Sequence record: PV472050.1
Reading direction: 5' to 3' (one strand)
Length of the DNA stretch: 64,000 bases
Shown: positions 11,078-51,573 of the stretch, in pieces
Position numbering within the stretch: the stretch's first letter is position 1
Layout of the letters: each line of letters starts with the position of its first letter
Notes under the pieces: generated by a model
Databases searched by the model: none
Told to the model about the DNA's origin: nothing
Seen by the model: the letters and a program-made list of their open reading frames with translations, nothing else
Translations under genes and position numbers: made by a program

Positions 11078-14000
11078 ATGACAGACGAACAGAACACATC
11101 CCTTTCCTATGCTAAATGGTTGGTTAAGTACCTGAGATGTAACAACCTACCCAAAGAACTGATCGATGATAAACGCCTCCGTATTGATTGGGAGGCTCGA
11201 ACAGACGATGAAACCCTTTTAGCTCACTTCAATGAAGACAGCTTAAGTGGTATCAAGACTGTTCGTTTTCTCAAGGACTTTTTCAACTACCAAGCGGGTT
11301 ATGATCGGGAGACCCGGAATACCAGTTTCCTCAGAACCACGGAAGTGTTCAGGCAACAGGGGATCAATAACTTTTACTTCATCCTCCAATTGAACAATCC
11401 CCTGTTGAAAGGGGTGGATCCCTTTGATCCTAACCTCACTCCTGAGCAACAGGTGTGGGTCCTGGAGGAGTGTCGGAGTAACTTTTGGTACTTCCTACGG
11501 GAAGTCTGCCGGTTAAAGCCGAATCAGCCCTTCTTAGCGAACCGGGGGAATATCAGCTTTATTTGGTCGTATTTGAATCACATTACCACCTACATGATCA
11601 TGCCGCGGCAACAGGGTAAGCAGCAGCGGAACAGTGCTAAGGTTCGTATTGTGCCTAAGGATACCCTGAAGACTATTACCCCTCAGGATACTTGGAAACG
11701 GATCGAACACCTACGGGTGGGGGATCAAGTCCTGGACCGTTCCGGGAAGCCGTGTCAGGTGATTGGCATTCATCCCCAGGGTAAACGCCGGTTGTATCGC
11801 GTCATTACCAGTGACGGACGAGCCACGGATGTAGGGACTGAACATCTGTGGACCTTGAAGGATTATTCCAACTGCCTCAATGGACGTGCACTCTGGAATG
11901 ACTATTCGACCGTTGATGTCATTAACCTGTTGAAGAAGAAGGTTAAACTTCAATTGCCGTTACCGGCTCCGGTACCCGGGAGTGAACAGGACCTACCTAT
12001 TGACCCGTACGTTCTCGGGTTGATCTATTGCGGACAAGATCAAGACGGTAAGGTTATTATCCCCACGCGTACGGATGCGGTTAAACAGTACGTAGCTGAT
12101 CATCTCCCTCGGGGGGTAACAGTTATTCAGGGAGTGGCTAACAGTTGCTTAGAACGGACTGATAACCAACCTTATTTATTCAACAGGGAACACGGTTTAC
12201 CGGATCAATACCTAGAAGCCCCTTTAAACGCCCGGAGAGACCTCTTACAGGCGTTTTTAGACGTTAGGGGTAAGGTTGGTAGGGGTAAGGTCTTTATAGC
12301 CTTAAATCGCGTCCTAGGAGGTCAACTGGCGTATTTAGCCCGTAGTCTAGGTGGAACCGGTAAAGTCACCAAGAACGGAGTAGAGATTACCCTACCGGAA
12401 GAGGTACCTCCGTTCAAGTTCAGGGAAGAGAATGTCGTCTTTGATAATCGGTTGCTGATCGAGCGGGTGACTTTCGTAGGGGATGACGATTGTACCTGTA
12501 TTGAAGTCGATAACAGTGAACAGTTGTATTTGACCGATGACTTCATTGTGACCCACAACACGGTATCGGTTCAGGTGATTGACTTCTGGTTAACGTACAT
12601 CATGGGCCGGGGGTATACGAGCCACTTGATTACCTTGAAGTCGGATAACCGAGCTCAGTTCATTGCGGCTATTAAGCAGATACGGAGTTCCATTCCCTCG
12701 TATTTGATTAACTCGACCTACAAGGACAAGGATGCTGGTACCAGTCTGACCTACAAGGCCTTTGGGGAAGATAACGTTAATACGCTGTACATTAACGTCC
12801 CTCAGATCAGTCAGGATGCAGCAGGGGATCTCGGTCGGGGGTTACGGGTAGGGACTACCAACTACGATGAGTCCGGGTATATTCGGTTCATCGACACCAT
12901 CATTGACGGGTGTTCCCCGTCCTCGCTAACGGAAATGGCGTTGTGCAGAGAGCAGGGGTTGCCGTATGGGATTACGCACATTACGACCCCCAATACCACG
13001 CTCCATCCCAGCGGGGAGTTTATGTTCAATAAACTCATGAGTGCAACGGAGTGGCGGGAGAAGTTCTTTGATTGCTTCAGTGAGAGTCACTTGAGGCAGA
13101 TGTTACTCAGGGCTTCCCCTACGAAGACAACCTCTCCGTCAGTCTCCATGGTGTACAATTACCTTCAACTGGGTAAGGACAAAGCCTGGGTGCGGGAAAC
13201 CATTGACCTGCTAGGATTGAGTTTGGCGAAAGCCAAGATCGACTTATTGCTCATGTGGGTGGAAGATGGGGAGAATCGGTTGTTTGACGATGTGACCCGG
13301 GAAGCCATTAACAACATGAAGCGGGACGTGGTGTGGAGTAAGGAGTATCGGGACTGTAACCTGTACGTGGACTTCTTTGTGACCCAACAGGAATTGTTGG
13401 AGATGGCAAAGAAGGAGTACAATGACCATTTCCTGATTGGTGTGGATACGTCCTCAGCCATTAACAAGGATGCCTGCACCATTGTGATTCGCAGTATGAA
13501 GACGGGTAAGGTCATTGGGGTGGGACGATATCCCTTAACCTTCTTGGATGATGTCACAGCCATTGTTGTGGATTTGCTGGACGTGATTCAGAACAGCACC
13601 TTGATCATAGAGCGTAACTACGCACATCACATGATCGACAGTCTGTTGATTATGCTGCCGGCTAAGGGTATGGATCCCTTTAAACGGGTCTTTAACCAAA
13701 TCTACCAAGACACCGTCAATAACGCTAAGGAGTTTGAGGAAGTCCAGAACACCAAATTTGCTTACCGGAATAAAGCGTTCTACCTGAAGTATAAACAATA
13801 CTTCGGGTTCGTGACGACCAAGACCACTCGGGACGTCCTGTACGGCCTCATCCAAGAGGCGGTTGGGAATACCGGGTACGGCCTCTGTTATGCGAAGCTC
13901 GCGGATGAATTGATCAACCTGAAACTCAAGGGGGATCGAATCGACCACGATGCGAAGCAGCACGATGACTTGGTCATTGCGTGGCTACTGAGCTACTGGT

Positions 14001-14344
14001 TCATTAAGCTCGGGGAGAACAAGTCCTTGTACGGGATCCCTCCGGGGATTGCCTTAACGGACACCCGTAACCTACTGAACTCTGCTCAGAACCAAGGACG
14101 AACCGAGTATGAGCCGTACGTGGTTCAACTCATCGATAAAGTCCGGAGTAAGGTTCACAGCCTAACTGAAGAACTGATGAGCACCCAGGACAATATCTTA
14201 GCACTTCGTCTAGAGGTGGAGATTCGGAAGTTAGCCAAGATGTTGCCTCCGGAACAGAATCGCATGATGACCATTGACGTGCTGTTGGAGAACGCTAAAG
14301 TGGAACGCAACAAACGCCTACTGCAACAACGCAGAACAGCATAA
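11078..14344 (+). CDS. terL: terminase large subunit, intein-containing (1088 aa precursor, about 775 aa spliced)
   Basis: Walker A PRQQGK|T split by an intein; Walker B NYDES; RNase H-like nuclease motifs IGVDTS, IIERN, HDDLVIA. Confidence 0.93.
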   Translation: MTDEQNTSLSYAKWLVKYLRCNNLPKELIDDKRLRIDWEARTDDETLLAHFNEDSLSGIKTVRFLKDFFNYQAGYDRETRNTSFLRTTEVFRQQGINNFYFILQLNNPLLKGVDPFDPNLTPEQQVWVLEECRSNFWYFLREVCRLKPNQPFLANRGNISFIWSYLNHITTYMIMPRQQGKQQRNSAKVRIVPKDTLKTITPQDTWKRIEHLRVGDQVLDRSGKPCQVIGIHPQGKRRLYRVITSDGRATDVGTEHLWTLKDYSNCLNGRALWNDYSTVDVINLLKKKVKLQLPLPAPVPGSEQDLPIDPYVLGLIYCGQDQDGKVIIPTRTDAVKQYVADHLPRGVTVIQGVANSCLERTDNQPYLFNREHGLPDQYLEAPLNARRDLLQAFLDVRGKVGRGKVFIALNRVLGGQLAYLARSLGGTGKVTKNGVEITLPEEVPPFKFREENVVFDNRLLIERVTFVGDDDCTCIEVDNSEQLYLTDDFIVTHNTVSVQVIDFWLTYIMGRGYTSHLITLKSDNRAQFIAAIKQIRSSIPSYLINSTYKDKDAGTSLTYKAFGEDNVNTLYINVPQISQDAAGDLGRGLRVGTTNYDESGYIRFIDTIIDGCSPSSLTEMALCREQGLPYGITHITTPNTTLHPSGEFMFNKLMSATEWREKFFDCFSESHLRQMLLRASPTKTTSPSVSMVYNYLQLGKDKAWVRETIDLLGLSLAKAKIDLLLMWVEDGENRLFDDVTREAINNMKRDVVWSKEYRDCNLYVDFFVTQQELLEMAKKEYNDHFLIGVDTSSAINKDACTIVIRSMKTGKVIGVGRYPLTFLDDVTAIVVDLLDVIQNSTLIIERNYAHHMIDSLLIMLPAKGMDPFKRVFNQIYQDTVNNAKEFEEVQNTKFAYRNKAFYLKYKQYFGFVTTKTTRDVLYGLIQEAVGNTGYGLCYAKLADELINLKLKGDRIDHDAKQHDDLVIAWLLSYWFIKLGENKSLYGIPPGIALTDTRNLLNSAQNQGRTEYEPYVVQLIDKVRSKVHSLTEELMSTQDNILALRLEVEIRKLAKMLPPEQNRMMTIDVLLENAKVERNKRLLQQRRTA
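11621..12559 (+). mobile_element. class 3 intein (313 aa, N-terminal Gln) with degenerate LAGLIDADG domain
   Basis: block B TEHLW, block F CTCIEV, block G IVTHN|T; inserted between Walker A Lys and Thr. Confidence 0.9.
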
Positions 14345-41017: not shown

Positions 41018-41081
41018 TTCAGGAATGAGGTTAAAACTCGTCTTTATTGAAAAGACTGCTGTTGACTGTAATGGAGCCGTT

Positions 41082-43388: not shown

Positions 43389-43427
43389 CCCCATGATAGA
43401 CTCACGGTATGGAGAGGAATGTAACTC

Positions 43428-44693
43428 ATGGTAATGAAGATCAAACTCCGTGAATGGGCTAATTTACCAGAAGAAACTGTTCTCCGTTGGTTAAATACCC
43501 GTCGGTGGGTGGAGGTCACGGATGACCTGGACCAAGTCGCTCTAACGGATACCTACGCTCTGATCATTACCTGGCATGGAATGATCATCCACCGGCATTA
43601 TAACGATGTTCCCTATTCCATTAAGGAGATGGTACCCAGTAACAAGGTGGAAGGGGCTGAAGACACCGTCTATAACGATGGAACCAACGCGACGCCTATT
43701 AACCAGTTCTTAAAGGTCATTCTTCCTACGATTATTGACCCGGTGGAAGTGGACGGGATTAAACGGCTTATTCATATCTGGCAGAATAAGCTAAATAACC
43801 TGCTGGTGGTGATGAGTGAACGTTACGTTATTTCAGCCACCGCTGAATCCGTAGCGGAGTTCATGGAAGATGAAGGGATCTCTGGAATACGGGACCGTGT
43901 CCTGAGCAAGGAGATTTCAATTGATGAGGGTGAGCGGGAGTTTGCGGATTATGTCCGGACCGCTCATTCCATTGCCAACAACACCCTCACCCTGCTGTCG
44001 CGTACGGGCGGGGTGGCCATTAACCAGGCGTATCAGAAGACGATCATCCGGGGTAAGGTCTTTGACCTGAACAACTCGATCATGCCGAATGCGATTACGG
44101 TTCCGTATGCGCATGGGATTACCAACCTGGCTGATATGCTGGGTGAACGGAATGCAGCAGGTAAAGCCGGAGTTTTGTCTTCAAAGATAAAAATCCCTGG
44201 TGGATGGAAGACCATGGGTAACATCCGGGTGGGTGATGAAGTCGTTACACCCGATGGAGGTACCGCTAAGGTGCTGGCAGTTCACCCACAAGGTGTAACC
44301 AAGGTTGTACGGGTGCACTTCAAAGACGGTCGATATACTGACGTTAGTCCAGATCACCTGTGGAAGGTTAGACGTCATCATTGGTGCAACGATAAAGCCA
44401 TGGCTAAACTCACTCGGGAGGAAGTGGAAGAACGTGTATGGCGAGTCATCACCACCAATGAGTTGAAAGACTATATTGGTCTGTCAACTAAGGTATACGT
44501 CCAACTGATTGAACCTGAAAGAAATGCCGATAAACCCTTCAAAATTCACCCGTATGTGCTCGGTGTCTTGTTGGGGGATGGATGCATTAGTCAAAAGGCT
44601 GTGGATATCACCAAACCTTATCAACAGCTATTCGATAAGGTCCAATCGCTATTGCCAGAACATTTGGAATGTGTTTGGCGGACGCAATGGTGA
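43428..44693 (+). CDS. non-virion RNAP beta' C-terminal subunit (phiKZ gp74-like): N-extein plus intein N-half
   Basis: extein ends GERNAAGK; intein blocks A, B and C follow; frame ends at TGA 44691. Confidence 0.82.
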   Translation: MVMKIKLREWANLPEETVLRWLNTRRWVEVTDDLDQVALTDTYALIITWHGMIIHRHYNDVPYSIKEMVPSNKVEGAEDTVYNDGTNATPINQFLKVILPTIIDPVEVDGIKRLIHIWQNKLNNLLVVMSERYVISATAESVAEFMEDEGISGIRDRVLSKEISIDEGEREFADYVRTAHSIANNTLTLLSRTGGVAINQAYQKTIIRGKVFDLNNSIMPNAITVPYAHGITNLADMLGERNAAGKAGVLSSKIKIPGGWKTMGNIRVGDEVVTPDGGTAKVLAVHPQGVTKVVRVHFKDGRYTDVSPDHLWKVRRHHWCNDKAMAKLTREEVEERVWRVITTNELKDYIGLSTKVYVQLIEPERNADKPFKIHPYVLGVLLGDGCISQKAVDITKPYQQLFDKVQSLLPEHLECVWRTQW

Positions 44694-45258
44694 TAAAGAA
44701 CCTAAAACGTTTGCGATCCGTTTTAAAGATCATGTAGGAGGGCCGCTCAACAAATGGCATATCCGTGATGGCCTGAAGGAACTGGGCTTGTATGGAACGC
44801 GGTCGTGGGAAAAAGTCATTCCCGAAGAATATCTTCACGGATCGGCTAAACAACGTTTGGAGCTCCTCCAAGGACTGTTGGACACAGACGGAACTGTGGA
44901 CAAACACAAATCGGTTAGCTTTAGCTCTTCGTCTAAGTTACTCTCCCTCGGAGTGCAATACTTGGTCAGAAGCCTAGGGGGGATGGCACGTCTCCAAGAA
45001 CGTACTCCCCACTACACCCACAATGGAGAAAAAAGGGAAGGTCGTACGGACTATCGGGTTTATATCCGATACCCTCGACCAGAAGAACTCTTCACCCTAG
45101 ACCACAAACGGGAACGTGCGGTCTCGCACCAGCATACGGAAACTCTGAGACTGCAAGTAACTCATATTGAAGAACGTCCTGATGAGGAGACACAATGCAT
45201 TACGATCGATCATCCTGATCATCTGTACATTACAGACGACTTCATTGTCACCCACAAC
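44166..45258 (+). mobile_element. class 3 intein (N-terminal Ala) with LAGLIDADG endonuclease, broken by a +1 frame change
   Basis: AGVLSSKIK, PDHLW, LGVLLGDG, LQGLLDTDG, TQCITI, IVTHN|S; span 1093 nt = 364 codons + 1. Confidence 0.88.
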
Positions 45259-46533
45259 AGCTTGACCAATAACGGCAAGGCCCTGAAATCATCGGAATGG
45301 TTCCACCGGAAGGTACATATCCTGTCCGCTGTGGTAGCGGATATCGATCATTTCACGGACTGTGGTACGACCACTACAGTGCCGATCCGAATTCCCAATA
45401 TGCAAGCGGCAATGGCACTGTTGGGTAAATTCAGGGTAACCGATACAGGAGAATTAGAACTCATTGATCAAACCACGGTGTGGTCAATTAAGCCAGGGGA
45501 GTGGGTTAATATTCGTAGTGTAGCCTTCTGTAATCACTACAATAACGCTTCACCCTGCCGGGTATGCTACGGGATGATGGCGAGCTCTATCCCGTATAAC
45601 GTGATGATGAAGAAAGGGGCTAATGTCGGGATGTGGTGTGCTACCTCGATCTGTAACCCCATCGGTCAGGGAATGCTCTCCACCAAGCATTTCATTCGGA
45701 ATGCAACGACCCGTAAGTTCGTTCCTGCGACTAAGGATAAGAACGTTATCTATTCCAATGGTGACGATATTTTCCTGACTAAGGAGCTCTGCGCACCAGG
45801 CACTGAATTGGTGCTCAAAGCCGATATTGTGAACATCCTCTCGGATATCCGTTCCTTGGATGTTCTGGACAACTTGAGCCTGGATAAACTCCCGTACTTC
45901 TCTGAAGTCACATTCCGCTATGAAGTCGAAGACATCATGATGGGGGGTAAGACCCTCCAGCAGCACGCGGCCTGTACCTCGGTGTCGTCTCGGAATGCCC
46001 GGTTCTCGTTGGAGTTCCTGAACTATCTCCTGAGTAAAGGTTGGGCGAACGAAGGTAAGAAACATATTACCGTTGATTTGAGTGAATGGAATACGCTCAG
46101 TCCTATCTTCACACTGCCGTATGTTCGTGAAGACTTGGACATGCACAGGGCTCGGGTAGAGAACTTCATCACGTTCAATAAACGCAATAACGCCTGGAGA
46201 CAGCAGATCGTTACACCCCGTCTCTTTGGTGAAGTCTTAGCGGAATACTGGGGGTTGATCAACCAGGAAACGAAAGGAATTAACATCATCCATCCTGAGG
46301 TCTTACTCTATTCCACGTTGTGTCGGGATCCCATGCGCGGGGATTATTCCCTGGCGAATGGTAATGGACCTAAGTATTTCGTGAACTTCCAGGAGTGTAT
46401 CAAAGGCAGAGGGGCGGGTATGCTAATGATCTACGAGAACCAGCAAAATGTGCTGAGCGATCCTAAGACATTCCGTGTGGTAAACCGTCAGGGGAGTCCG
46501 CTGGAGTGCTTCTTTAGCTTAGCGGTGAGTTGA
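44509..46533 (+). CDS. non-virion RNAP beta' C-terminal subunit: intein C-half plus C-extein (true 5' end uncertain)
   Basis: authentic sequence from about 44680; C-extein SLTNNGKALKSSEWFHRK, DCGT, CRVCYG, QGMLSTKH. Confidence 0.82.
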   Translation: MNLKEMPINPSKFTRMCSVSCWGMDALVKRLWISPNLINSYSIRSNRYCQNIWNVFGGRNGDKEPKTFAIRFKDHVGGPLNKWHIRDGLKELGLYGTRSWEKVIPEEYLHGSAKQRLELLQGLLDTDGTVDKHKSVSFSSSSKLLSLGVQYLVRSLGGMARLQERTPHYTHNGEKREGRTDYRVYIRYPRPEELFTLDHKRERAVSHQHTETLRLQVTHIEERPDEETQCITIDHPDHLYITDDFIVTHNSLTNNGKALKSSEWFHRKVHILSAVVADIDHFTDCGTTTTVPIRIPNMQAAMALLGKFRVTDTGELELIDQTTVWSIKPGEWVNIRSVAFCNHYNNASPCRVCYGMMASSIPYNVMMKKGANVGMWCATSICNPIGQGMLSTKHFIRNATTRKFVPATKDKNVIYSNGDDIFLTKELCAPGTELVLKADIVNILSDIRSLDVLDNLSLDKLPYFSEVTFRYEVEDIMMGGKTLQQHAACTSVSSRNARFSLEFLNYLLSKGWANEGKKHITVDLSEWNTLSPIFTLPYVREDLDMHRARVENFITFNKRNNAWRQQIVTPRLFGEVLAEYWGLINQETKGINIIHPEVLLYSTLCRDPMRGDYSLANGNGPKYFVNFQECIKGRGAGMLMIYENQQNVLSDPKTFRVVNRQGSPLECFFSLAVS

Positions 46534-46560
46534 GTGGGTGACCCCGTTCGTTAGTGTGGA

Positions 46561-46596
46561 CCTCTTAAGGGGGTCCTCGGAATCCCCCTTAAGAGG
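46561..46596 (+). promoter_or_regulatory. hairpin containing the helicase ribosome-binding site
   Basis: 13-bp perfect stem CCTCTTAAGGGGG/CCCCCTTAAGAGG; AAGAGG in the 3' arm 6 nt before ATG 46603. Confidence 0.5.
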
Positions 46597-46602
46597 TTGA
46601 TT

Positions 46603-48885
46603 ATGCGAGCAACAGCAACTATCAGCAAAGCGAATCATTACTTCAGAATCAACGGGTTCTATGAGGAATTCGCGGTTCGGGTAATCTTACCGTTTTGTAA
46701 ACTGAATCTCTGCAAGATGGCTAAGAAGCCAATACCGGGTACCCGGAAGCAGGCGTGGTTTGTTCAACACGTCTTTGCTCGGTCGAATTATGACAAAAGT
46801 GAATACCGGCTACCCATTGAAACCCTTAAAGAGTTTGTGGAATTTGCGGGCTACAGGGGGTATAAAGAATCCCGCCTGAAGATTCAGGATGAACCGGAGA
46901 TCGAAGGCAAGGATGTTGTATTCGAATTCAATCCAGGGTTTGATCAGTTCAGGGAGGGCCAAGGTGAATGGATCGACTACATGCTGAGCGATGGCCACCT
47001 GAAGGTCAATAACGCCTCCACGGGCTTTGGGAAGATGCAACCGCTGTACGCGAAGATCAAAGTCCCGGGTGGTTGGAAGACCATGGGAGAGATGACCGTC
47101 GGTACGGAGGTCATTGCAGCGGATGGTACGGTCACTCAGGTGACCGGTGTTTACCCGCATGGTAAACAACCCATCTACCGTTTGCACTTCGAAGACGGGC
47201 GTTATACCGACGCGGGACTGGATCACCTGTGGAAAGTGTTTACAGAGGAGACTCAGGCATGGACAGTCGTTGATACCCGTTCCGTACAGACCCTGTTGGC
47301 GAAAGAGCCAGAAGGGGTATTTATCCCTCTGTGTGAGCCTGAAGACGGTCCAGAGAAGCCCTTTGTACCGGACCAATTGGAAGGTTCCCGCCAACAACGG
47401 CTGGAATACTTACGGCGACTCATGGATGAGAAAGGGTATGTGCGTGATGACGGTAGCCTGTCCTTTTCCAGTGAGGATGAGTGGGAAAGCACTACGGTTC
47501 AATACCTGGTTAGGAGTCTAGGAGGTATTGCTCGAAAGGTACCGTCTACAGGACTGTACCGCCGCAGGCAATACCGGGTGTATATCAAGTACCCTCGTCC
47601 CGAGGAACTCTTTACCTTAGCGAATAAGGGTGGTGACCTGGCATCAAAGTCGGGTAACCAGTCCCTTAAGCTCCGGGTGAGTCGTATTGAATTCATTGGG
47701 GAACACGAAGCCCAGTGTATCTCTGTAGCGCACCCGGATCGTCTGTACATCACCGATGACTTCATTGTCACTCACAACACGTATATGGCCATCCACAGCA
47801 TGGTGAAGATTGGTAAACGGACGTTAATCACCATGCAACCCCGTTACCAGATCAACTGGATACGGGAACTCAACAAGATCGTTAAACTCATTCCAGGGGA
47901 TCTCTTAATCTGGGAGAATACCCTGGAATCGTTGTATGAGTGTTTAGAAGACGGGAAGTTTGATCCTAAGATCATTATTATTCCGATGTCTCGTATTGAG
48001 GTCTTCCTCCGTAAAGGGAAAGAGACCCGAGACGGGTTACATATGGATGATTTGATCAAACGGATCAATCCGGGATTAAGGATCATTGATGAAGGGCATG
48101 AAGCGATTCATCAGATCTTCTTGTCCCTAATGTTTGGGAATATCAAGAAACTCTTCCTGCTCTCAGCCACCTTGAAAGCAGACGATCCCTTTACGAACAA
48201 GATGTACCAATACTTGTTCCCTAAGCGGCTACGGTTAAAGGAGGCAGAACCCGAGCATTACATCGATGTAGTGGCGTACCTGTATCGCCTCAACACCCGT
48301 CGTTATCATCTCAAGACGGATCAGTTTGGGGCGTATAACGATAAGACGTTTGAAAAGAGCATCTTAAAGTCGGGTGTACTCCTGGCATTCTACTTTAAAC
48401 TGGTTAATAAGGCCTTTAAGGAGTATTACCTCAATGTGAGGCGTGAGGGAACGAAGTGCTTGTTCTTCTTCTCCAGGGTCAGTATGTGCGATGCCATGTT
48501 GGAACTGTTCAGGAAAGAATATCCCGGCTGGGATTTCGAAACCTTTACTGGGGACGATTCCAAGCTGAAAGATAAGAAGGACAAGTACTTAAAGCACGAG
48601 ATCATCATTACGACTCCGAACAGTTGTGGGACAGGTAAGGATATCGGGGGGTTGGTAACGGTGATCTGCGCCCACACGGTTGCGTCGACTCAGGCTAATA
48701 AGCAGATCATTGGACGACTCAGGGCGTTGTCGGGTAAGTTCAATAATGAGATCGACCCTGCCTTTGTGTTCCTGGTGTGTTTGGACTTAGCGAAGCACGT
48801 GGAATACTTAGCCAAACGGGAACAGGTGTTCTTTGAGAAACAGAAGACCTTCAAGCGTATCAATTCGGAATGCTCCCTGGACTGA
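46603..48885 (+). CDS. SF2 DEAH-type helicase, intein-containing (phiKZ gp75-like; about 512 aa spliced)
   Basis: STGFGK|T Walker A, IIDEGHE, LSAT, GTGKDI, QIIGRLR. Confidence 0.9.
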   Translation: MRATATISKANHYFRINGFYEEFAVRVILPFCKLNLCKMAKKPIPGTRKQAWFVQHVFARSNYDKSEYRLPIETLKEFVEFAGYRGYKESRLKIQDEPEIEGKDVVFEFNPGFDQFREGQGEWIDYMLSDGHLKVNNASTGFGKMQPLYAKIKVPGGWKTMGEMTVGTEVIAADGTVTQVTGVYPHGKQPIYRLHFEDGRYTDAGLDHLWKVFTEETQAWTVVDTRSVQTLLAKEPEGVFIPLCEPEDGPEKPFVPDQLEGSRQQRLEYLRRLMDEKGYVRDDGSLSFSSEDEWESTTVQYLVRSLGGIARKVPSTGLYRRRQYRVYIKYPRPEELFTLANKGGDLASKSGNQSLKLRVSRIEFIGEHEAQCISVAHPDRLYITDDFIVTHNTYMAIHSMVKIGKRTLITMQPRYQINWIRELNKIVKLIPGDLLIWENTLESLYECLEDGKFDPKIIIIPMSRIEVFLRKGKETRDGLHMDDLIKRINPGLRIIDEGHEAIHQIFLSLMFGNIKKLFLLSATLKADDPFTNKMYQYLFPKRLRLKEAEPEHYIDVVAYLYRLNTRRYHLKTDQFGAYNDKTFEKSILKSGVLLAFYFKLVNKAFKEYYLNVRREGTKCLFFFSRVSMCDAMLELFRKEYPGWDFETFTGDDSKLKDKKDKYLKHEIIITTPNSCGTGKDIGGLVTVICAHTVASTQANKQIIGRLRALSGKFNNEIDPAFVFLVCLDLAKHVEYLAKREQVFFEKQKTFKRINSECSLD
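47035..47778 (+). mobile_element. class 3 intein (248 aa, N-terminal Met), endonuclease partly deleted
   Basis: MQPLYAKIK, LDHLW, AQCISV, IVTHN|T; block C absent. Confidence 0.9.
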
Positions 48886-50277: not shown

Positions 50278-51573
50278 TCAATGCCACTCCAAATCCAACA
50301 GGTTCGTTTTACTACCTGCAGTGTGATGGGCTTTCATGCGCTGCAATAAAAATGCAGTAGGAATCAAGACCACTTCAGAGCTGAGACGATGCCCTAAAGC
50401 CCCTAGACCTTCCCCACAACAGGTCTTACAGTAGTAACCGTCCTTTAGGGTACAGAACTGAGGGACTCTGGCTTGTACGGGTTTATTAACGTAACGATCC
50501 AGGTTTTCAGTAGTGAGCTGTATCAGGACTTTCCCATCCTGGATCCACGTTCCTACCCAGTACCCTTTATTGGTTGGCAGGATCGTAACAGTTTCTGTTA
50601 CCGGGGTACCACAATCCACGATATCCTCGCTAACGGCTGTACGGCCTATTAGACGCAACGTTTCCTTAACCCTAGCCCCACCTTCACCGGTGGACATAGA
50701 ACGGCTGTAAGAGCCCTCTACGGCCGTATTAATGTAGTCCGCCAAGAAGTTCGGATCCCAACCCTCCGCCAGGGAGTTAGGGAGCAGTACCCAACCGTCT
50801 CCTGAGGCACTGGGTTCAATACCGAAGGAAATGAACATCCGCTTACGCGAGTTGTCAATAAACTTCTTTGCAATAAAGAACTTACGGCTAGGACCAGACA
50901 TTACGATCTTCATGTCCAGCGCCACACACTGATCAATAATCGAGGTGGCAACAACCGGATCATTGAGTTCGTCTTTATGCTCTTTAAAGAGACGATCCCG
51001 GAGTTTAATGACTTCAGGACTCACCGTTAGGGCGTCCACACCACCCGGTTTAATGAAGTGAGACCCTAACCCTTCCAGGAACTGGCAGTTATGGGAGAAC
51101 TTCAAACACTGGTCTACACTGGCTTTCCCCTCAGGTACCGCTTCCCCCGGTGGGGGATTATCCACCATGAGAGTTTCCAAGATCTTCAAGATAACCGGTT
51201 TGGTGAACTCCTGGTTAAGGTAGGGTTGGGTCTTCCTGAAGCATTCCCAGAAGAGGATAACGTTGAAGAGTAAGAGTCCAAAGGTAGTCGTGACTGCTTT
51301 ACCTTGCAACACGGGATGGAAGTCTCCCGGGAGTTCCAGGATTTCATCCATGTAGAACAGGGGTTCATTCACCTCCCCATTTACGGTATGGGTAGAACCC
51401 TCTACCACGACATTGAACCGATTATTCTCCACAAAGACAGCATAGGGGTATTTCTTGAACTGTCCAGAGGAATCTTCGTCTTCAAACTGGATAGTAATAA
51501 TCGATTGAATAGCCGCCTTTTCGTTATAGGCTCGGTTATTCAGAAAGAGTTTAAGGTAGTCGAGTTTAGTCAT
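50278..51573 (-). CDS. virion RNA polymerase beta' C-terminal fragment (phiKZ gp80-like)
   Basis: bridge-helix-like SMSTGEGGARVK, DCGT, Zn site RVPQFC...CKTCCG, trigger-loop-like QRMKAHHTAG. Confidence 0.8.
   Translation of the reverse strand: MTKLDYLKLFLNNRAYNEKAAIQSIITIQFEDEDSSGQFKKYPYAVFVENNRFNVVVEGSTHTVNGEVNEPLFYMDEILELPGDFHPVLQGKAVTTTFGLLLFNVILFWECFRKTQPYLNQEFTKPVILKILETLMVDNPPPGEAVPEGKASVDQCLKFSHNCQFLEGLGSHFIKPGGVDALTVSPEVIKLRDRLFKEHKDELNDPVVATSIIDQCVALDMKIVMSGPSRKFFIAKKFIDNSRKRMFISFGIEPSASGDGWVLLPNSLAEGWDPNFLADYINTAVEGSYSRSMSTGEGGARVKETLRLIGRTAVSEDIVDCGTPVTETVTILPTNKGYWVGTWIQDGKVLIQLTTENLDRYVNKPVQARVPQFCTLKDGYYCKTCCGEGLGALGHRLSSEVVLIPTAFLLQRMKAHHTAGSKTNLLDLEWH

Follow-up and report, generated by a model that had tools for sequence, protein, structure and literature searches.

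A class 3 intein in the RNA polymerase bridge helix of jumbo phage MIZ-Pa99 is frame-broken by one extra base, a probable error private to a single sequence record

An RNA polymerase subunit gene of the jumbo phage MIZ-Pa99 (PV472050) is interrupted by an intein assigned to class 3, and the reading frame of this intein is broken by one extra C at position 44683. We consider it likely that this base is a sequencing or assembly (base-calling) error or, at the most, a private mutation that arose very recently in the sequenced stock, because the base is private, the same intein allele is intact elsewhere, and the record contains other private frame-breaking indels. The break is, judging from the sequence comparisons below, most likely not an evolved split-intein or recoding arrangement. 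Positions are those of the window, the whole 64,000-nucleotide stretch of PV472050.1 that was analysed, whose numbering coincides with that of the record, and the intein-bearing gene and the features described within it lie on the plus strand.

By homology, the gene that hosts the intein is that of the nvRNAP beta' C-half subunit, a member of the phiKZ gp74 family. The C-extein (45259..46533; 424 aa plus stop), which comprises the second half of the bridge helix, the Zn site and the trigger helix region, matches phiKZ gp74 (chain D of 7OGP, 7ogp_D) in a phmmer search with an E-value of 1.2e-23, query residues 4-415 aligning with chain residues 258-667. In gp74, the bridge helix corresponds to L242-Y279; this subunit also contains the trigger helix and Zn site (bioRxiv 10.1101/2021.04.06.438582). 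The C-extein match places the Ser+1 residue of the intein at approximately residue 255 of gp74, in the middle of the bridge helix. Because the intein interrupts this helix, a beta' subunit left unspliced should be inactive. The N-extein (43428..44165; 246 aa, ending ...ERNAAGK) carries an RNA polymerase subunit annotation; it matches residues 1-246 of the intein-less 670-aa protein from phage GXNNE2 with 100% identity.

In PV472050, this locus is annotated as two overlapping 'RNA polymerase beta subunit' CDSs (43428..44693 and 44524..46533). The counterpart in EL is a single 3111-nt CDS, gp039 (YP_418072; 1036 aa), and IR-QUMS and HHBS47_1 each have a single CDS of ~3.1 kb at the locus. Across positions 43400-46600, MIZ-Pa99 shares 97-99% DNA identity with EL and other EL-like jumbo phages (Elvirus). 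Annotation in this group is uneven. PV472050 is filed under Straboviridae, although MIZ-Pa99 is an Elvirus (Chimalliviridae), and the IR-QUMS and GXNNE2 records (OP599913, PV400809) label both the RNA polymerase subunit and the neighboring helicase as 'terminase large subunit', labels that probably arise via intein similarity. A 1.28-kb insert, which encodes a 'transposase' (EL gp037), lies just upstream of the gene for the beta-like subunit in EL and IR-QUMS but is missing from MIZ-Pa99 (window site 41020-41041), HHBS47_1 and the L026 contig described below; the beta-like ORF itself encodes 787 aa in MIZ-Pa99 instead of 768.

The intein boundaries are defined by the empty site. In a multiple alignment, the intein-less allele of GXNNE2 and GXNNA8, which encodes 670 aa, shows a gap of exactly 44166..45258, equivalent to 1093 nt (364 codons plus 1 nt), with an uninterrupted K|S junction. 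The first intein residue is an alanine (GCC at 44166), and no Cys, Ser or Thr nucleophile is present at this position. Block B contains a His-Leu-Trp motif (44355..44363), whose tryptophan, W66 (44361-44363), is the class 3 Trp and aligns to the HxW of Msm DnaBi1. The block F cysteine, C344 (45196..45198), aligns with C118 of Msm DnaBi1 and is by homology the class 3 branch nucleophile, while block G consists of Thr-His-Asn, aligned with the THN of the same intein, followed by Ser+1 (45250..45261). The WCT triplet typical of class 3 is complete (W66, C344 and T362 at 45250-45252), as are the C-terminal His-Asn pair (H363, N364) and Ser+1. In an alignment of 36 family members, H64, L65 and W66 are near-invariant, and C344, T362, H363 and N364 are invariant. 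Together, these residues support the assignment of the beta' intein to class 3.

The N-terminal part of the intein matches the class 3 inteins Msm DnaBi1 (6BS8) and Mch DnaB-1 (6RIX), and also gp41-1, in the PDB. Msm DnaBi1 and M. chimaera DnaB-1 have Ala1, the block B Trp, the block F Cys, THN and Ser+1 in common with the MIZ-Pa99 intein. A class 3 intein is also found in the DnaB of mycobacteriophage Bethlehem. Unlike the two mycobacterial proteins, which are mini-inteins, the MIZ-Pa99 intein has a full two-motif LAGLIDADG homing endonuclease domain (Pfam LAGLIDADG_3) in a PI-SceI-like arrangement. The first motif (YVLGVLLGDGCIS; 44553..44591, frame 0) corresponds to helix 129-138 in an AlphaFold (AF2) model built on the intact relative allele of the L025 contig (mean pLDDT 93.5), and the second (RLELLQGLLDTDGTV; 44854..44898, +1 frame), matched by Pfam LAGLIDADG_3, corresponds to helix 227-241. 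Residues G133, G137, D138 and G139 of the first motif and D239, T240, D241 and G242 of the second are invariant in the 36-member alignment. The model is PI-SceI-like overall (TM 0.70-0.75), and its Hint part resembles class 3 mini-inteins. PI-SceI and PI-PfuI likewise join a Hint domain and a two-fold LAGLIDADG endonuclease in one chain, but use class 1 chemistry (Cys1) and share only 13-16% sequence identity with the MIZ-Pa99 intein. Close relatives of the intein, with up to 68% identity, occur in more than 1200 database proteins, most of them in SNF2- or PhoH-type helicases of jumbo phages, at the P-loop; within this widespread phage class 3 intein family, the RNA polymerase bridge helix appears to be a secondary site that is rarely occupied.

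The frame break lies inside the endonuclease domain. The upstream ORF (43428..44693; 421 aa) terminates in ...CVWRTQW with TGG TGA TAA, its stops (44691..44696) following three out-of-frame residues, T-Q-W, while the open stretch of the +1 frame extends over 44509-46533. Frame 0 encodes block A, block B and the first LAGLIDADG motif, and the +1 frame encodes the second LAGLIDADG motif, block F, THN and Ser+1. Alignment with relatives identifies the private base as the bracketed C of GGCGGA[C]GCAATGG, outside any homopolymer. In the model of the intact allele, the break falls between intein residues 172 and 173, in the turn of a beta-hairpin (strands 167-171 and 182-186) within the first LAGLIDADG half. 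Much of this had been described in a sequence-only reading of the same stretch. The ORF list and the sequence confirm its two-frame layout, with a front part ending at TGA 44691-44693 and the back part and C-extein in the +1 frame, and the alignment narrows its estimate of the break (about 44670-44690) to one base. Its placement of the break between the two LAGLIDADG motifs with both splicing halves intact agrees with the presence of all catalytic residues, and its class 3 call with Ala1, the two block residues, THN and Ser+1. The empty site confirms the proposed length of 364 codons plus 1 nt, the proposed 670-aa spliced product has the size of the intein-less GXNNE2/GXNNA8 protein, and the identification of the subunit as the one with the bridge helix is borne out by the gp74 match and helix assignment.

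The extra C is absent from at least nine related sequences, and the split arrangement is seen in none of them. In IR-QUMS, HHBS47_1 and HHBS8_1, it is the sole length difference from MIZ-Pa99 at the break in the alignment, while EL and phiRU carry an in-frame +6 variant there, which in EL amounts to two extra codons. Three further sequences also lack it: L025, a Logan assembly contig from ERR13713528; L026, a 209.7-kb contig from GCA_031164995.2; and L027, from SRR25799395. Between L025 and MIZ-Pa99, the C at 44683 is the only indel over 5.7 kb (98.3% identity), and the two are 100% identical over ~660 nt around it. Likewise, it is the only indel separating L026 and L027 from MIZ-Pa99 in the 9.2 kb around the gene (98.2% identity). 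The L025 protein, P0001, is an uninterrupted 1034-aa protein, found in a protein search with the C-terminal piece, that is 99% identical to both MIZ-Pa99 pieces and reads ...CVWRSNGDKEPK... through the break site. A second lineage, P0126 on L026 and L027, is also an uninterrupted 1034-aa protein, and further intact alleles include EL gp039 (1036 aa), phiRU, P0133 and P0134, as well as P0122. The sequence-only reading had called for a comparison with related phages and held that reads with a single-base indel restoring one ORF would speak against a split. At the level of sequence comparison, such an indel is what is seen, with the break confined to MIZ-Pa99 and present in 0 of at least nine relatives. 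Exact-pattern searches of IMG/VR and JGI metagenome contigs returned neither the broken nor the intact junction, and so no independent copy of the broken form; no second copy of the exact N-fragment, the annotated C-fragment or the helicase protein of MIZ-Pa99 is on record in the protein collection searched.

The gene is also broken in HHBS8_1 (L006), farther downstream in the same intein, and we considered this as a second natural case. The lesion there is a 1-nt deletion in an A6 run at approximately the equivalent of window position 45029; two more 1-nt losses lie within 1.6 kb (equivalents of ~46569 and ~46584), and the gene is annotated as three CDSs. The case was rejected: because one base is lost from an A6 run, further 1-nt losses are nearby and no ORF carries blocks F and G, the HHBS8_1 break is probably a homopolymer error rather than biology.

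The MIZ-Pa99 intein can be told from that of EL by its endonuclease domain. EL gp039 and the other Elvirus alleles occupy the same gene and the same K|S bridge-helix site, with the same splicing blocks and 97-99% DNA identity, but have no extra base at 44683 and are in frame there. MIZ-Pa99 in turn carries an alternative 23-nt mosaic patch (44732..44754) that encodes HVGGPLNK instead of RRSEQHIN in surface loop 189-196 of the model. The patch differs from EL, IR-QUMS, HHBS47_1, HHBS8_1 and phiRU, and nowhere else in the window are private substitutions so densely clustered. A reading of the patch as a low-quality stretch was rejected, since L025, L026 and L027 have the identical patch with intact ORFs. 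P0126 of L026 and L027 also has the MIZ-Pa99 Thr and Glu (GTRSWEKV), and P0001 of L025 keeps the Glu, with Met in place of the Thr. On the basis of these matches, the patch is a real circulating allele and not an artefact. Intact copies of the MIZ-Pa99 intein allele are therefore in circulation, and the extra base alone is peculiar to this record. No match of at least 14 nt to a patch donor was found inside the MIZ-Pa99 genome, and the 23-nt patch has no exact-pattern match in IMG/VR and JGI metagenome contigs. An AGGAGG within the patch (44736-44741) was discarded as a candidate new ribosome-binding site, because the C-terminal frame offers no start codon at a distance of 5-12 nt downstream, and ATG 44754 is in the wrong frame.

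Other alleles are mosaic as well. phiRU has patches of its own at 44166-44177 and 44582-44606, and P0134 (1029 aa) has a strongly diverged endonuclease domain flanked by identical Hint parts. Among alleles, the splicing blocks are constant and the endonuclease domain is mosaic, which suggests recombination between intein alleles.

A paralogous class 3 intein of 248 aa, 48% identical to the RNA polymerase intein, occupies the P-loop of the neighboring helicase (47035..47778, plus strand). Its first LAGLIDADG half is deleted, including the region equivalent to the 44683 break, while the second motif is kept; owing to this loss, its endonuclease is presumably inactive. The corresponding empty site in GXNNE2 reads TGFGK|TYMA in a protein of 512 aa. 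GXNNE2 (L003) and GXNNA8 lack both inteins, and their empty sites are exact (K|S and GFGK|T) in genomes that are otherwise ~99% identical, so that, as read from these alignments, the two class 3 inteins form a clean presence/absence polymorphism among near-identical jumbo phages. Elsewhere in the window, the terminase large-subunit ORF (11078-14344; 1088 aa; EL gp011 homologue) has an HLW at 255, a THN plus nucleophile at 491 and a weak Hint match, and probably contains a third class 3-type intein.

Quality of the MIZ-Pa99 record was assessed by comparing the whole genome with EL and polarising the differences with HHBS47_1, IR-QUMS and GXNNE2. Apart from the one at 44683, no uncompensated private indel falls in a conserved CDS of the 64-kb window, which indicates that the assembly is not grossly noisy and counts against an error. 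A 1-nt difference at 50287 is not counted among the private errors, since it lies in a divergent 3' tail. Elsewhere in the record, at least five further private indels disrupt the frame of an ORF that every relative compared has intact. These comprise a CC insertion at 100014 in the gp092 homologue (807 nt in three relatives), loss of AC at 104766 in the gp100 region, a C added to a C-run at 111532 together with a 1-nt loss at 111603 in the gp104 homologue, a 1-nt loss at 143052 in the gp136 homologue (501 nt, versus 502 nt in 8/8 relatives), and losses of 3 nt and 1 nt at 187782-187793 in a 2543-aa virion protein (EL gp183 homologue). The virion protein is a single CDS in 8/8 relatives and is split in MIZ-Pa99 into two CDSs annotated as 'tail fiber'. 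With ~6-8 such events in 210 kb, one within a 3.1-kb gene is unsurprising (about 10%). MIZ-Pa99 is a viable lytic phage that has served to treat keratitis in an animal model, according to a title cited in PMC13109396. For a phage that is viable although two presumably essential genes are broken in its record, consensus errors are a better explanation than several tolerated lesions, and several of the other frameshifts in PV472050 are probably spurious, though among the remaining private indels some could represent genuine mutations of dispensable genes.

If the extra C is real, the phage might survive by protein trans-splicing. The 421-aa N-fragment, which comprises the N-extein, the A and B blocks and the greater part of the first LAGLIDADG half, would pair with a C-fragment produced from an internal start (e.g. 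TTG 44788) or by reinitiation near the stop, and the reassembled Hint fold would release the 670-aa subunit while the endonuclease would be dead. We regard this as unlikely. It is compatible with the intact splicing halves and catalytic residues, with a window otherwise free of private CDS frameshifts, and with a break in the hairpin turn of a domain half that the helicase intein lacks; because that paralogue does without the whole first LAGLIDADG half, the broken region is probably dispensable for splicing. Possible starts are also present. The candidate at 44775..44790 comprises AAGGA (44775-44779), a spacer of 8 nt and TTG 44788 in the C-terminal frame; the sequence-only reading had the frame right and the spacing, given as 7 nt, wrong. 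Its SD duplex energy of -5.7 kcal/mol is ordinary, given that among the start-like triplets of the window -4 is reached by 26% and -6 by 12%, and every relative with an intact ORF has the same AAGGA, spacer and TTG. GTG 44671, named in the same reading as a possible start, does lie in the C-terminal frame, with no SD and an energy of -0.9 kcal/mol. The start and its SD thus show no sign of adaptation, and the split itself is private to one record, missing from at least nine relatives that include carriers of the same allele, in a record with other private frame-breaking indels, one of them in a giant virion protein. Moreover, a 1-nt shift inside the LAGLIDADG domain is unlike the known natural split inteins, which are separate genes broken at the endonuclease insertion point.

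Published work shows that split class 3 inteins can trans-splice, and the only naturally split class 3 intein reported is AceL NrdHF, after 1701 class 3 inteins had given no split variant (PMC7891396). As one natural example is known, trans-splicing in MIZ-Pa99 is chemically conceivable; in principle, the class 3 reaction could proceed in trans, both nucleophiles being located on the C-fragment. However, AceL NrdHF is a mini-intein encoded by two separate genes whose fragments have high affinity (PMC7891396), whereas MIZ-Pa99 has overlapping ORFs, a 1-nt shift inside the endonuclease domain, no conservation of the split and no dedicated start in evidence. With the extra base private, the same allele intact elsewhere and the start unremarkable, the natural split intein favored by the sequence-only reading found no positive support. 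That MIZ-Pa99 truly carries the base and reassembles the fragments to ligate the bridge helix halves in trans, as a split intein caught at birth, is in our view quite unlikely.

The C could instead be a real, non-adaptive mutation, either a variant of a mixed stock that entered the consensus or a recent defective genome accompanied by co-infecting intact genomes, with no rescue in cis. A private C amid ~660 nt of 100% identity to L025 fits a very recent event, and several of the other private indels could share its origin. A plaque-purified lytic stock should not, however, be dominated by a lethal allele, and short of read-level allele frequencies such a mutation has the same appearance as a sequencing error; we hold it to be very unlikely. 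A single precursor would be restored by programmed +1 recoding, whether through frameshifting on the ribosome or slippage during transcription, and the shift needed is indeed +1, with the stop only 8 nt past the inserted base. Yet inspection of CAA UGG UGA finds no slippery or re-pairing site, including for tRNA-Trp at UGG UGA, in agreement with the lack of a good +1 re-pairing site noted from the sequence earlier, and there is no homopolymer for slippage, which leaves recoding unsupported. The arrangement occurs in no relative and nothing about it is conserved. Recoding, which had been offered alongside a split intein and a sequence error, is extremely improbable for a site that exists only in MIZ-Pa99.

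Sequence error is the best supported of those options. An error is favored because the unspliced product should be inactive, yet MIZ-Pa99 is viable and lytic, and it is favored over an evolved split because neither a dedicated start nor a slippery site is evident. Two features of the site count against it, namely that the C is not in a homopolymer and that the break affects the portion of the intein that splicing needs least. With the extra base taken as an error, the locus would be a normal EL-like jumbo-phage gene that encodes a single precursor of ~1034 aa. Conserved residues and family membership suggest that the class 3 intein in this intact precursor would splice in cis, with the block F Cys attacking the N-junction, the acyl group then moving to Ser+1 and the terminal Asn cyclising. 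The outcome would be a subunit of 670 aa whose bridge helix is continuous.

If, as is most likely, the base is an error, the matter is one of curation, as PV472050 splits one essential polymerase subunit into two CDSs. If it were real, it would show that a single frameshift in a homing endonuclease can split an intein while an essential enzyme is still supported, and the locus would offer a direct view of split-intein origin and, following AceL NrdHF, only the second class 3 intein known to be split in nature, newborn in a cultured, therapeutically used jumbo phage. Whichever cause of the break holds, the locus documents a class 3 intein inside the bridge helix of a jumbo-phage RNA polymerase, with presence/absence polymorphism and mosaic endonuclease domains among near-identical phages.
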